From positions 1 through 64,000 of the forward strand of contig NIVC01002442.1 of assembly GCA_002269645.1 (NCBI GenBank): a DNA stretch of 64,000 nt. The letters run 5' to 3'. The notes under the pieces were generated by a model, which was not told the origin of the DNA, made no database searches, and saw only the letters and a program-made list of their open reading frames with translations. Positions 22,596-57,102 of the stretch are shown one piece after another. Position numbers and translations under genes: made by a program. The DNA is from Macrostomum lignano (taxonomy: Eukaryota). Each line of letters begins with the position of its first letter. The stretch's first letter is position 1.

Positions 22596-23755
22596 TCAGC
22601 CCATGGCGTATTTCCGGGTCCACTCCCGGGCCACGCTGTTGTACTTTTCCCTGTCGCTTTTGTACATGCGGGCGATCTCCGGCACCAGCGGGTCGTCCGG
22701 ATTGGGGTCGCACAGCAGGCTGCAGATACTGAGGAGGACCTGAGGGTCAAACGGGGTCAATAGGGTCAGAGGTCAGACTGCAGACACTGAGGAGGACCTG
22801 AGGGTCAAACGGGGTCAATAGGGTCAGAGGTCAGACTGCAGATACTGAGGAGGACCTGAGGGTCAAACGGGATCAATAGGGTCAGAGGTCAGACTGCAGA
22901 CACTGAGGAGGACATGAGGGTCAAACGGGGTCAATAGGGTCAGAGGTCAGACTGCAGACACTGAGGAGGACCTGAGGGTCAAACGGGGTCAATAGGGTCA
23001 GAGGTCAGACTGCAGATACTGAGGAGGACCTGAGGAGGTCAAGGGGTTAAGTGAACAGGCTGCAGGCGCAGAGAAGGACCTGAGGGTCAAACGGGGTCTA
23101 TAGGGTCAGAGGTCAGACTGCAGATACTGAGGACCTGAGGAGGTCAAGGGGTTAAGTGAACAGGCTGCAGGCGCAGAGAAGGACCTGGGGTCAAGGTGGT
23201 CAAGGGAATCAAGGTCAGGGGTCCAGGTGTTGGGGATCAAGGAGGTTAGGGAGTCAGGAGGGTCAAAGTGGCCAGGGGTCAAGGAGGGTCAAGACGGTCA
23301 GGGGGTCAAGGAGGGTCAAGGTGGTCAAGAGGGGTCAAGGGGGGTCAAGATCAGAGGGTCCTACTGCAAAGAAAGTCCCTGGAGAGGCCAACAGGCTTTG
23401 AGGAGTTTGGGAAGAATCAGTCAGAAAAAACCATAAACTTCCCCAACCTCACCTTTGAGATGGTGAGGGCGGGACTCCACTGGCTGCGCAGGATGTCCAA
23501 ACAGATGGAGCCATTGCTGTTGATGTTGGGATGGTAGATTCTGGTGCTGAAGGCCACCTTGGGCGGCTTGAACGGATAGTCGGTGGGGAAGTGGATGGTG
23601 AGGAAGAACACGCCGCCATGGTAGGGGCTCTCGCTGGGCCCCATGATGGTGGCCTGCCAGTGGAACAGGTCATCACCGACTGGCCCGGCTGAGCACTGGG
23701 CTGGGGGGTCGCGGCCCAGGTCCTGCAGCTCTTTGTTGATGCGCTTGAGGGCCAT
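22596..23755 (-). CDS. UBE2D: Ubiquitin-conjugating enzyme E2 D (UbcH5/Ubc4 family), 148 aa, 2 exons
   Basis: [40 protein letters not shown] (exon 23755-23453) plus [28 protein letters not shown] (exon 22739-22596); GT-AG intron in phase 0. Confidence 0.97.
22720..23190 (-). repeat. 58-bp minisatellite that repeats the UBE2D exon-2 acceptor junction
   Basis: CAG|GTCCT junction at 22740 (true site), 22798, 22856, 22972, 23030, 23080, 23135 and 23185; the copy at 22914 has lost the AG. Confidence 0.93.
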
Positions 23756-25388
23756 CGGGGCTCTGAATGAGGAATCCCAGTTGTGCTAGTAGTAGTATAG
23801 TAAGTGAATTGCATGCAGTTTTTGAAAACTGGCTTGTTTTTATTAGGAAATTAGGCAATCGTTGGTCAAATTAAAATCTGCTTTGCTTGATCTATCTGAG
23901 GCCAAATTCCATGTAACACATTACAATAACAGAAATTTAGATAACAGAATTATCAGTGTTTTGCTATAATGGCATCTATATGCAACAAACCTATTTTTGA
24001 CTAAAAATTTGATAACAAATTGAAGATTTTTTACTTTGTTTTTTTGTTATATAAAAAACCAAGTTGCCTAGCTGGTGTAATTCTGGAGGTTGTGCAAGCA
24101 TGTGTAATAAAGACTGTTTTTTTGCCATAAAGCAAACTCATAGCTGCAGAAAAACAAAGACTATTCAATATGAGTGTCTTTTCAGGACTGTCCATGGTCA
24201 TACAAGCTGTAAGAGCATTTTTGTATTGACATATTCATAAATATGCAACTTTGTAAATTTTACCTAGCCATTGCAATATATTTTCATAAAAATTGGTATA
24301 CCTGAACTTAAATACACTGTTTGCAACATTTACTTTGTTGTGCATGCAATTTAAAGCTTTTCTTTCTTTGGCTTTAACTATTTAATACTTTTACTCATTC
24401 TCTTTTCTCTTTTTAATTGCCCACATCAACTTTAAATTCTTTTTTTGTATGTTTTCTTTTGTTTTATTTATTTAAGGAACATTCAATTTATCTGAGTCAT
24501 GAACAAACTTTACAGAGAAACTATTAAAACATATGATTATTTCAATTTAGGATAAACCATTTTAGTATATAGAATTAAGACATGCAAATTTGAAATAGGC
24601 TTTAAACTTTTAGTAAAAATGACCTTATTTTAGTAGTTATTCTATTATTACTATATTTTAATGTTTTTGAGATAAAATGCATATAAAAAAAACTAGTAAA
24701 AGATTTAAGGGGGAGCTGCATAAGTATCCAACCCCTTATTGAGTTTGATTTTTTAAATTTTTTTTATGGAAAATATATATTATCATGTAAATTTACATGA
24801 TATATACATAGAAGTTAATCTAGTAACTTACGCCTTCCCATTTGTAAAATACTACTAGTAGGCCCTATATTATAGAAATTGTTTCACTACTAATATAATC
24901 TTTGGTACTCTTTGTATACTTTTAGCAAAACTGCTTAGCCTTAAGAAATAACACATTTTTATTAGAAACAATATATTCTTTTATGCTACAAAATAATAAT
25001 GGAACAATAAAAATTAAGTTTTATAATATCTACTATATGTAGATATACATATCTACATGGCTATATATATCATATATATATATATGAAATGCCAACAAAT
25101 AGATTACTTAATCAAACCTATATGCATAAAAATTTTAAGCTGTACTATCATTTTTTTTCTTTAAAAGGCTTGTTCTAAAGTCTCAAAGATGTGAGACATA
25201 CTAGAATAAAAAAGTGGTATTGAAAAAACTATACCAGAACTTTTTTGTAAAAAATGTATACTATGCTAAAAAGCTATACAAAAATAAGATCAATATAAAC
25301 AAAATGAGTAAATGTCACATTACTTGAATTGTTGCTCTTTCAAAATAATATTTTTTATTAGCAAGCACTTTTATATCTAAATATGATA

Positions 25389-56200: not shown

Positions 56201-57102
56201 CCCAGCGCCTACCTGTTGAGAGTGTACATGACAGCGGCCAGCCGCAACCCCAGCGCCTACCTGTTGAGAGTGTACATGACAGCGGCCAGCCGCAACCCCA
56301 GCGCCTACCTGTTGAGAGTGTACATGACAGCGGCCAGCCGCAGCCCCAGCACCTACCTGTTGAGAGTGTACATGACAGCGGCCAGCCGCAGCCCCAGCAC
56401 CTACCTGTTGAGAGTGTACATGACAGCGGCCAGACAGCCGGCCAGCGGGGTGCCGGTGAGCTGCCAGGAGGTGGCAAACAGGCCGCAGATGAGCAGGCCG
56501 TTGAGGAAGAGCACCGAGTAGATGTAAAAGTAGATTGGCTGCAAATATGTCTACAAGGTTGGCGAGATAGGCGAGCGCTGCCGATATGTAGAGAAAAGAA
56601 CTTAACAGTGCAAGATTTTCGCACTCACCCCGAACCAGGTGTACCGGTACAGCAGCGCGAGCAGCACCTCCTGGTAGATGTTCATCCTGCTCAGCACGTT
56701 GATGGTGTCCGGGTGCTCAGTGGAGTTGTCCCTGACCAGCTCGAAGAGGCCCTGCCAGAGGCTGGGCGCCCGCACCAGCTGCTTGTAGTAGGAGTAGTAC
56801 AGCCCCTGCTCAGTGCGCAGCGAGATCTCCCGCTCCACCTCCTTGATGTTGGAGAAGTACAGCGTGGACTCGTGAATCTCGTTGGTCAGCCAGGCGAAGC
56901 CCCAGGCGCAGCCGAGCATCAGGCCGATGCCGGCCGTCCACTCCAGCACGGTTGCTAGGCAGCCGAGCCAGCCGGGGAGGCCTCCTTCGCTGTCGCCGGC
57001 AGCCGACAAGTCGCCGCTAGGCGGTCCGCCGGGAGCCTCCAGCGCTGACGAAGTCCCGCCGGAGAGGGAGCGCTGCCGCTTGGCCTTGCTGTACTTGCCC
57101 AT
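50254..57102 (-). CDS. DPY19: DPY19-family C-mannosyltransferase (DPY19L3/L4-like), about 793 aa, 10 coding exons, one apparent frameshift
   Basis: Exons 57102-56629, 56550-56405, 55706-55577, 55482-55348, 55180-54932, 54456-54383, 54343-53980, 52029-51815, 51386-51126, 50586-50254. Motifs RTEQGLYYSYYKQ, INVLSRMNIYQE, LREHFSLPF, WQFNQFVLLLQ, RMKYFWTPYMC, GSMQLLAGVKCCTGRRITNHPHYED, ILEDSIC. Confidence 0.93.
50580..51107 (-). repeat. 27-bp minisatellite repeating the acceptor junction of the last DPY19 exon, about 19 copies
   Basis: Unit CCACAG|CTGTACCAATCACCCGCCACC; the true exon starts CAG|CTGTACCAAATC. Confidence 0.95.
51398..51806. repeat. (GACA/GGCA)n tetranucleotide repeat filling a DPY19 intron
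   Basis: Directly visible. Confidence 0.97.
52140..53830. repeat. 45-bp minisatellite in DPY19 intron 7, about 37 copies
   Basis: Unit CCATCTCACCCCATATAATCCTACCCCATCAAATTCCATCCCATC with recurring variants; G-rich on the transcribed strand. Confidence 0.97.
54495..54925. repeat. 49-bp minisatellite in DPY19 intron 5, about 9 copies
   Basis: Unit TAAATAGTAATTTACACAACATATCGGCTGTGGAGTCAAGCTAATATGC. Confidence 0.96.
55870..56062. repeat. 25-bp repeat in DPY19 intron 2
   Basis: GGCAGGTTCAGAAGTGGTTGGGGGA-like units. Confidence 0.88.
56098..56434 (-). repeat. 48-bp minisatellite repeating the DPY19 exon-2 donor junction, 7 copies
   Basis: AACAG|GTAGG junction at 56404 (true site), 56356, 56308, 56260, 56212, 56164 and 56116. 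Confidence 0.96.

Follow-up and report, generated by a model that had tools for sequence, protein, structure and literature searches.

A 64,000-nt stretch of the Macrostomum lignano genome, referred to here as the window (identical in sequence to contig NIVC01002442 reversed; assembly GCA_002269645.1, Mlig_3_7), carries three minisatellites whose repeat units are copied splice junctions. Array A1 copies the acceptor of the last exon of a UBE2D-type E2 enzyme gene, array A2 the acceptor of the last exon of the C-mannosyltransferase gene DPY19L3, and array A3 the donor of DPY19L3 exon 2. All three are head-to-tail arrays in which the unit joins exon sequence, a splice dinucleotide and intron sequence, the authentic junction is the terminal copy, and array length is unstable. 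Very likely these arrays are "mirage"-type minisatellites, which arose as a nearly neutral by-product when minisatellites turned over in ancestral introns of short length. The class has already been described in the mirages of amphioxus and in the variable number tandem repeat (VNTR) of intervening sequence 7 (IVS7) of human F7; A1–A3 are new flatworm members of it, and we found no report of such junction arrays in Macrostomum in the literature.

The composite of minus-strand exons between 50.2 and 57.1 kb matches DPY19L3, with the M. lignano protein A0A1I8JBA3 as top match, almost identical to the window exons; its cluster comprises three GenBank proteins of GCA_002269645.1 on three contigs. 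Annotated proteins were mapped by exact spliced alignment, giving 10 coding exons and nine introns whose junctions are those of the annotated A0A1I8JBA3, PAA86155 and PAA54772. The UBE2D gene has a single intron (exons 23755–23453 and 22739–22596). Its spliced product can be aligned gap-free with solved UBE2D/UBC-2 structures and equals the annotated PAA54776, PAA57816 and PAA86159, which lie on the same three contigs, except for two additional N-terminal residues in the annotation. A preliminary description had reported unrelated 58-, 48- and 27-bp minisatellites in two genes, each with a unit spanning a splice junction and including exon sequence. Tandem Repeats Finder (TRF), the sequence, the annotated proteins and homology confirm this, with 9–29 nt of exon in the units. 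The features of the UBE2D gene are as follows; here and below a slash marks a splice junction, and a slash in brackets marks alternative bases.

23453 to 23755, minus strand: UBE2D exon 1 (M1 to K101), donor AAG/GTGAGG.
23185 to 23452, minus strand: UBE2D intron, 5' part, with unique sequence for about 100 nt followed by about 170 nt of degenerate 8–10-nt CTTGACCCC repeats.
22740 to 23184, minus strand: A1 decoy units, eight in number, of 50, 55, 50, 58, 58, 58, 58 and 58 nt.
22596 to 22739, minus strand: UBE2D last exon, coding from V102 onward and including the stop codon; the A1 unit includes the first 24 nt of this exon, whose acceptor is the authentic site and the terminal copy.

TRF reports A1 (22716–23184, minus strand) as 7.3 copies of 58 bp. 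Each unit consists of an exon-like head (GTCCTCCTCAGTRTCTGCAGTCTG) and an intron tail ending in CCCTCAG, so that successive units meet at CCCTCAG/GTCCT, and 24 nt of the unit are exon. At their 5' start the units read exon-like GTCCTCCTCAGTRTCTGCAG(T/C)CTG, and the real exon 2, downstream of the units, starts GTCCTCCTCAGTATCTGCAGCCTG/CTGTGC. Two unit types are present, one of 58 nt and an older one of 50 nt. The 3' end of the intron's 5' part, CCCCAG/GTCCT, forms the first decoy acceptor; seven of the eight decoy acceptors are intact and one has mutated to CAT. Branch-point-like TTGAC and CTGAC motifs occur in the UBE2D intron repeats at 23185–23350 and in the A1 units, and also in the 49-bp units of DPY19L3 intron 5 (GCTTGACTCCACAG).

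The second array takes up an entire intron:

51126 to 51341, minus strand: DPY19L3 exon 9, 3' end ...ACCAGACAG/GTGAGC.
50587 to 51125, minus strand: A2, the whole of DPY19L3 intron 9, made of a degenerate first unit (GTGAGCGAACCCAGGACCTCCCCACAG, starting GTGAGC) and 19 units of CTGTACCAATCACCC(G/A)CCACCCCACAG.
50254 to 50586, minus strand: DPY19L3 exon 10, the last exon, stop codon included; it starts CTGTACCAAATC, and the A2 unit includes its first 9–10 nt (CTGTACCAA).

A2 (50578–51125, minus strand; 27 bp and 19.6 copies by TRF) has units ending CCCCACAG/CTGTACCAA, with 9–10 nt of exon 10 within the unit, and the authentic acceptor is the last copy. Four variant units read CAAG/TG, which moves the AG by 1 nt. 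The non-array remainder of intron 9 is only about 19–27 nt, so the branch point must lie within the repeat.

The third array lies on the donor side:

56405 to 56550, minus strand: DPY19L3 exon 2; the A3 unit includes the last 27–29 nt of this exon (GGCCGCTGTCATGTACACTCTCAACAG), whose donor is the authentic site and lies furthest upstream of all copies.
56096 to 56404, minus strand: intronic part of A3, six decoy copies (exon 2 tail plus donor) and the 21-nt intron head of the first unit.
55707 to 56095, minus strand: remainder of DPY19L3 intron 2, a 25-bp array (55872–56061) plus roughly 200 nt of unique sequence that reaches the exon 3 acceptor.

A3 (56096–56433, minus strand) contains seven copies of a 48-nt unit (48 bp, 7.0 copies by TRF) built from 27–29 nt of exon 2 tail, the donor CAG/GTAGG(T/C) and 21 nt of intron, that is GGCCGCTGTCATGTACACTCTCAACAG/GTAGG(T/C)GCTGGGGCTGCGGCT. 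The donors recur at 48-nt spacing, reading CAG/GTAGGT in the authentic site and decoy 1 and CAG/GTAGGC in decoys 2–6, and the copy contiguous with the exon is the most upstream one. Two of the three units had been said to contain AG/GT, and this holds: A1 and A3 have it, and A2, with CAG/CTG (AG/CTGTAC), does not. Many near-identical sites are indeed offered to the spliceosome, with intact decoys at all three arrays. That the authentic site is the terminal copy, also remarked on earlier, is true of all three arrays but is a geometric necessity, since only the copy contiguous with the remainder of the exon gives the original mRNA. The unit cores of A1–A3 occur nowhere else in the 64-kb window, so the units are locally derived; a dispersed repeat family or mobile element as their source is thereby ruled out.

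The locus is present in three copies in the assembly, which we compared: the window contig (L003), L001 (with its UBE2D part on L009) and L002 (with its UBE2D part on L010), the latter two being separate, redundant copies. The sequenced DV1 line has duplicated chromosomes, and the assembly is redundant at at least 95% identity (PMC5730564); the three contigs may thus be alleles or duplicated chromosomes. DPY19L3 exons differ among the copies by 0.5–0.7% and array-free introns by about 3%. Unit counts in the window, L001 (L009) and L002 (L010) are 8, 8 and 2 for A1, 19, 15 and 17 for A2, and 7, 3 and 2 for A3, where the middle L001 copy reads CAT/GTAGGC. The UBE2D intron measures 713 nt in the window versus 391 nt in L010, which has two A1 units. 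Intron 9 of DPY19L3 varies in near-exact steps of its unit:

Window 50587 to 51125: intron 9, 539 nt (20 x 27 − 1, with one 26-nt unit).
L001 16160 to 16591: intron 9, 432 nt (16 x 27).
L002 15290 to 15775: intron 9, 486 nt (18 x 27).

All five array-bearing DPY19L3 introns vary in length among the three copies, and the four array-free introns are length-stable (78, 94, 167–169 and 85–87 nt). The recurrence of the arrays in three contigs with differing counts indicates that they are real, that they predate the split of the copies, and that they are unstable like ordinary minisatellites. Annotation of M. lignano was guided by RNA-seq (PMC5730564), and the annotated coding sequences use the exon-side site at all three arrays in every gene copy, whatever the unit count.

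It had been considered earlier that the arrays might be assembly artefacts, with the repeats or the exon extension produced by long-read mis-assembly, collapse or expansion. The assembly is PacBio-based, the window copy has homopolymer-type 1-nt deletions (the 26-nt A2 unit and a frameshift in exon 7), and the amphioxus BflGb6 mirage was itself mis-assembled in that species' draft genome. Nevertheless, each of the arrays is found in three contigs that were assembled separately, with counts that differ and internal variant patterns that are shared, their units carry ordered substitutions as real arrays do, and at 0.3–0.5 kb they are much shorter than the reads. The arrays are no artefact of a single contig, and we regard an artefactual origin as very improbable. 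In exon 7 itself (about 54069–54070, minus strand) the window copy has lost 1 nt in a C run, reading GCA-CCGAC where L001 and L002 have GCACCCGAC; the resulting frameshift explains the truncated 523-aa annotated product PAA57820. This deletion is either a real disabling mutation of the window copy or a long-read homopolymer error.

The repeat load of the locus bears on how often such arrays should arise. TRF returned 60 rows for the window, merged to 37 arrays that take up 23.5% of its length, and in 16 modelled introns the share of bases in tandem array is 81%; simple and tandem repeats together account for 15% of the M. lignano genome (PMC5730564). The non-array remainder of the modelled introns is 19–199 nt each, similar to the five array-free introns (78–167 nt). 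Arrays that do not cross a junction halt beside the splice signals: in DPY19L3 at +3 (intron 5) and +9 (introns 7 and 8), and in introns of a FERM-domain gene at +2/3, +3/4, about +6 and +10 to +19 on the donor side; −7 is a further such end point. The DPY19L3 arrays concerned are:

54491 to 54929, minus strand: 49-bp array in intron 5, from intron +3 to 35 nt before the acceptor, spanning no junction.
52138 to 53971, minus strand: 45-bp array in intron 7, beginning 9 nt past the donor CTG/GTGAGG.
51403 to 51806, minus strand: (CTGT/CTGC)n microsatellite occupying intron 8 between +9 and a point 61 nt upstream of the acceptor.

The 45-bp unit of intron 7 contains GGGGTGAGAT...TGGGATGGGATG, which resembles the authentic donor region, and the intron holds 36 GGTGAG motifs in the window's gene copy and 13 and 16 in the other two. 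This array may be a fourth, older and degenerate donor-side junction array. The description of a recurring class therefore stands, with three certain cases and this possible fourth, although the class is not a new one.

A mutational bias has also been put forward, in which tandem-duplication breakpoints would concentrate at exon–intron boundaries beyond what geometry predicts, driven for instance by coupling to transcription or splicing or by sequence motifs, C-rich TTGACC tracts being one candidate. When the 21 large arrays of the window are placed at random, 0.38 of them span a junction on average, so that the three observed are unexpected (P(3 or more) = 0.006); the tally excludes the ABCA-like genes (1–12000) and the zf-HC5HC2H intron (about 20040–20500), whose exons are unmodelled. 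Acceptor-side units are, in addition, rich in branch-point-like TTGAC/CTGAC and C-rich motifs, and many arrays begin 2–10 nt from a donor. However, the original introns were only about 80–170 nt long and the units are 21–58 nt, so many seed duplications that touch an intron will include a splice junction. In a seed model that places the duplication uniformly over an intron of I0 nt, a unit of u nt takes in 5 or more exon nt with probability 2(u-5)/(I0+u-1). Summed over 11 intronic minisatellites, it gives 4.2 expected cases at I0 equal to the remainder plus one unit, 5.0 at 94 nt, 3.2 at 167 nt and 1.9 at 300 nt, compared with three of 11 observed. With 3.2–5.0 expected, no junction-targeted amplification is needed. 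The comparison with shuffled positions proposed earlier, run here within the window, thus yields an excess over random placement but none over the short-intron model: the enrichment over the naive null vanishes when intron geometry is counted. Donor-abutting arrays are expected as well, as a 20–50-nt unit must fit into the 20–60 signal-free nt of an 80-nt intron. The case for a bias, moreover, comes from one locus in three paralogous copies, and with the count at or below expectation we consider it improbable.

The age of the host introns decides whether the duplications could have created them. For DPY19L3 we mapped the scallop gene (Pecten maximus, 16 introns) and aligned its protein with that of M. 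lignano. Alignment column and phase both agree with scallop for eight of the nine M. lignano introns, introns 2 and 9 among them; intron 8 lies in a poorly aligned stretch, four columns away from its nearest scallop counterpart. The UBE2D intron falls between K101 and V102, where cod (Gadus morhua) UBE2D3 also has an intron, with an offset of 1 nt (phase 0 in M. lignano versus phase 1 in cod). Since these positions are shared with scallop and cod, the duplications copied pre-existing junctions. The DPY19L3 comparison also shows nine introns in M. lignano (50254–57102) versus 16 in Pecten maximus, and with eight matching, about seven were lost; M. lignano UBE2D retains one of the six coding introns of cod UBE2D3, and the tick UBE2D is an intronless copy.

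Tandem duplication of AGGT is a proposed route to intron gain, represented by the Rogers model, Hellsten et al. 2011 (PMC3265369) and the potato RdRp (PMC4974935), and the preliminary description had linked the arrays to it. As in that process, the A1 and A3 duplications include AG/GT and yield additional splice signals; unlike it, an existing junction is copied here, and the introns are older than the duplications. If the arrays were instead the remains of an event that created or slid an intron by duplicating an AG/GT proto-splice site, the AG/GT of A1 and A3, the almost wholly array-derived DPY19L3 intron 9 and one FERM-gene intron, and the 1-nt offset of the UBE2D intron would find a place. 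Yet DPY19L3 introns 2 and 9 and six others keep the scallop positions and phases, and the UBE2D intron keeps the codon pair of cod. Nor are the intron ends copies of the flanking exon, as the Rogers model demands (GTGAGG... versus GTCCTC...): the intron 5' ends (GTGAGGTTGG..., GTGAGCGAAC...) are unlike the downstream exon, exon sequence being found in the decoy units only, and the A2 junction has no GT. Judged by these alignments, intron gain by AGGT duplication is excluded, most firmly for A2 and A3, and among the readings considered the one that makes the arrays its remains is the most improbable.

Recursive splice sites are juxtaposed 3' and 5' splice sites, AG/GTAAGT, within very long introns. 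The arrays resemble them in having AG/GT inside an intron, and the A3 unit, running from GTAGG to CAACAG, is formally bounded by GT...AG. They differ in that AG/GT is merely a copied junction and that the A3 AG lacks a clear polypyrimidine tract; the pyrimidine tract at the A3 junction, ACACTCTCAACAG/GTAGG, is weak. The introns are also short (713, 539 and 698 nt for UBE2D, DPY19L3 intron 9 and DPY19L3 intron 2; 0.4–0.7 kb overall), the GT side of A1, GTCCTC, is no donor consensus, and A2 has no GT. The suggested tie to recursive splicing is therefore weak, and we dropped it as unsupported.

What decoy use would produce differs among the arrays. From the sequence, splicing at any downstream A3 donor is predicted to give ...AAC AGG TAG, a stop upstream of later junctions, and this product would likely be a substrate for nonsense-mediated mRNA decay (NMD). 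Decoy use in A2 would add the in-frame peptide LYQSPATPQ per unit without a stop; the whole of intron 9 in L001, if retained, is an open reading frame reading VSEPRTSPQ and then LYQSPxTPQ repeats. Decoy use in A1 would truncate the E2, which would end in VLLS(I/V)... or in an alternative tail, the stop falling within the last exon. A protein search for the in-frame A2 isoform (EKTRQ-LYQSPATPQ...-LYQIYGRK) returned no M. lignano sequence whatever and is hence uninformative on decoy use. Three such different outcomes argue against one common function. Decay of decoys is sporadic (one CAT in A1, one CAT/GT in the L001 copy of A3, the CAAG variants in A2); as a sign of selection it was set aside, the changes being too few to argue either way.

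A selected system could nonetheless be imagined, in which the repeated junctions titrate or tune splicing through copy-number-dependent NMD or isoforms, or are served by a dedicated site-selection mechanism. The decoys are intact and near-identical to the authentic sites in all gene copies, unit counts differ between these copies, the in-frame TAG of A3 comes immediately and before later junctions, as suits an NMD substrate, and the 27-nt A2 units are in frame and stop-free, with intron 9 of L001 open throughout. Against it, all other arrays here are equally unstable, including intergenic and splice-motif-free ones, the frequency of junction-spanning arrays fits the neutral geometric model, and annotated products are canonical at any copy number. 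Its consequences would be NMD, last-exon truncation and in-frame insertion, which are unlike one another, and the constitutive spliceosome manages the F7 repeat without special factors. We consider such a system improbable. Repeat-length-tunable NMD in particular, raised in the preliminary description, is conceivable for A3 (AGG TAG) but for neither of the others, as the A1 decoy stop lies in the last exon and the A2 decoys are in frame.

The near-neutral by-product reading instead supposes that a short tandem duplication (27–58 bp), by replication slippage or unequal exchange, straddled the boundary of a very short ancestral intron. The duplicated junction would then have gained and lost units, as did the other minisatellites, which take up most introns here. 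The mRNA would stay unchanged while the exon-side copy is used, namely the most upstream donor or the most downstream acceptor, and the ordinary spliceosome would presumably pick that copy. For A3, the first functional donor in 5'-to-3' order is probably taken, as happens at the F7 IVS7 repeat; for A1 and A2, both of which precede last exons, the exon is probably defined from its unique downstream body. Mutational origin, near-neutrality and the manner of site choice are all points that we infer.

The two known systems lend this reading its closest parallels. In the human F7 IVS7 37-bp VNTR the first unit spans the exon 7–IVS7 boundary, giving 5–9 polymorphic, sequence-identical donors (Borensztajn et al. 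2006, PMC1557585). All of these donors are functional, yet experiments showed that only the most upstream is used, the constitutive machinery choosing among them by a 5'-to-3' scanning-type mechanism (PMC1557585). A3 corresponds directly to this repeat, with a boundary-spanning first unit, repeated donors downstream and use (in A3, by annotation) of the exon-contiguous donor; unlike F7, decoy use in A3 would give an immediate TAG, and F7 has no acceptor-side counterpart to A1 and A2. Amphioxus mirages occur at both boundaries, differ between haplotypes (six versus three units) and are spliced normally by reverse transcription PCR (RT-PCR; PMC3087553). Like A1–A3, they have units of exon, splice signal and intron, a terminal authentic junction and haplotype differences in copy number, they arise on the acceptor side (BflGb6, of which A1 and A2 are analogues) and on the donor side (BflGb9), and they have been found repeatedly in a minisatellite-rich genome. 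Units are 27–58 bp in M. lignano versus 150–160 bp in the amphioxus globins and 10–72 bp in amphioxus Adh3. Compared with that cephalochordate, the flatworm arrays reach about 19 copies, one of them forms an entire intron, and splicing outcome is known from annotation alone where amphioxus has RT-PCR.

Several points weigh against a near-neutral origin with exon-side splicing. Use of the terminal copy is read from annotated coding sequences, and multi-mapping among three near-identical copies could propagate one gene model. The decoys are nearly all intact, so that silent decoys and decoys too young to have decayed look alike. No demonstrated rule selects the last of about 19 identical modules of branch point, polypyrimidine tract and AG, and first-AG scanning or co-transcriptional "first come, first served" choice would predict decoy use. 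The seed model depends on an assumed ancestral intron length, and at 300 nt expects only 1.9 arrays. Finally, the three contigs belong to a single PacBio-based assembly, made from a single line, and exact counts may hold errors, given the homopolymer indels in the window copy.

Other arrays and genes of the window are recorded here. A 42-bp minisatellite of 106 copies (99% matches; 45231–49681) lies between DPY19L3 and ELOVL, which are about 9.4 kb apart in the window versus about 5.4 kb in L001, where this minisatellite is probably much shorter. A 21-bp array of 35 copies (57126–57869) lies in the promoter or 5' untranslated region of DPY19L3, stopping 24 nt short of the start codon. In the FERM-domain gene, the intron at 60162–60560 (minus strand) consists of GT, about 18.5 units of 21 nt (TCACTGTCTACCCTGCCAATC) and ACCCCAG; the reading frame runs through this array from one flanking exon to the other (HCLPCQS repeats), so that retention would keep the frame. 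The zf-HC5HC2H gene (19871–21364, minus strand) has an intronic array family at 20082–20388 with 16-, 34- and 69-bp units (GGGATTAGGAGCCATT), which appears to be internal and to span no junction.

Besides these, the window holds USP, SKP1, ELOVL and ABCA-like genes; the ELOVL protein was located on the window's own contig only. Exons of the ABCA-like (ABC transporter) genes form two near-identical sets about 9–10 kb apart on the minus strand (346–801 with 10415–10771, and 2314–2547 with 11074–11244), which suggests a local tandem duplication of a gene or segment. A (TGT)68 microsatellite lies at 9999–10204. Between UBE2D and USP, an AT-rich block (24000–32000, GC 0.32–0.38) with inverted 16-mers at 28041–28071 and 30802–30832 (ACCAAGATGGCCACAC and TGTGGCCATCTTGGTA) may be a transposon.

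With the arrays described here, mirage junction minisatellites, previously described in amphioxus and in one human gene, are now known from a flatworm as well. Their recurrence can be explained quantitatively in a simple way, by ancestral introns that were short together with a very high birth rate of minisatellites. Such arrays can mislead spliced aligners and gene predictors, complicate assembly, and may cause allele-specific differences in expression. A1 and A2 are natural substrates for studying 3' splice site choice among equals, with 7–19 identical modules of branch point, pyrimidine tract and AG placed before last exons, in an animal for which transgenesis and RNA interference are available. 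There is also a small chance that a strict "exon-proximal site" rule for acceptors and donors lets M. lignano tolerate, and perhaps exploit, up to about 19 intact decoy 3' sites, or that A2 yields isoforms with n x LYQSPATPQ. If either were true, array copy number would heritably adjust how housekeeping genes are expressed or structured.

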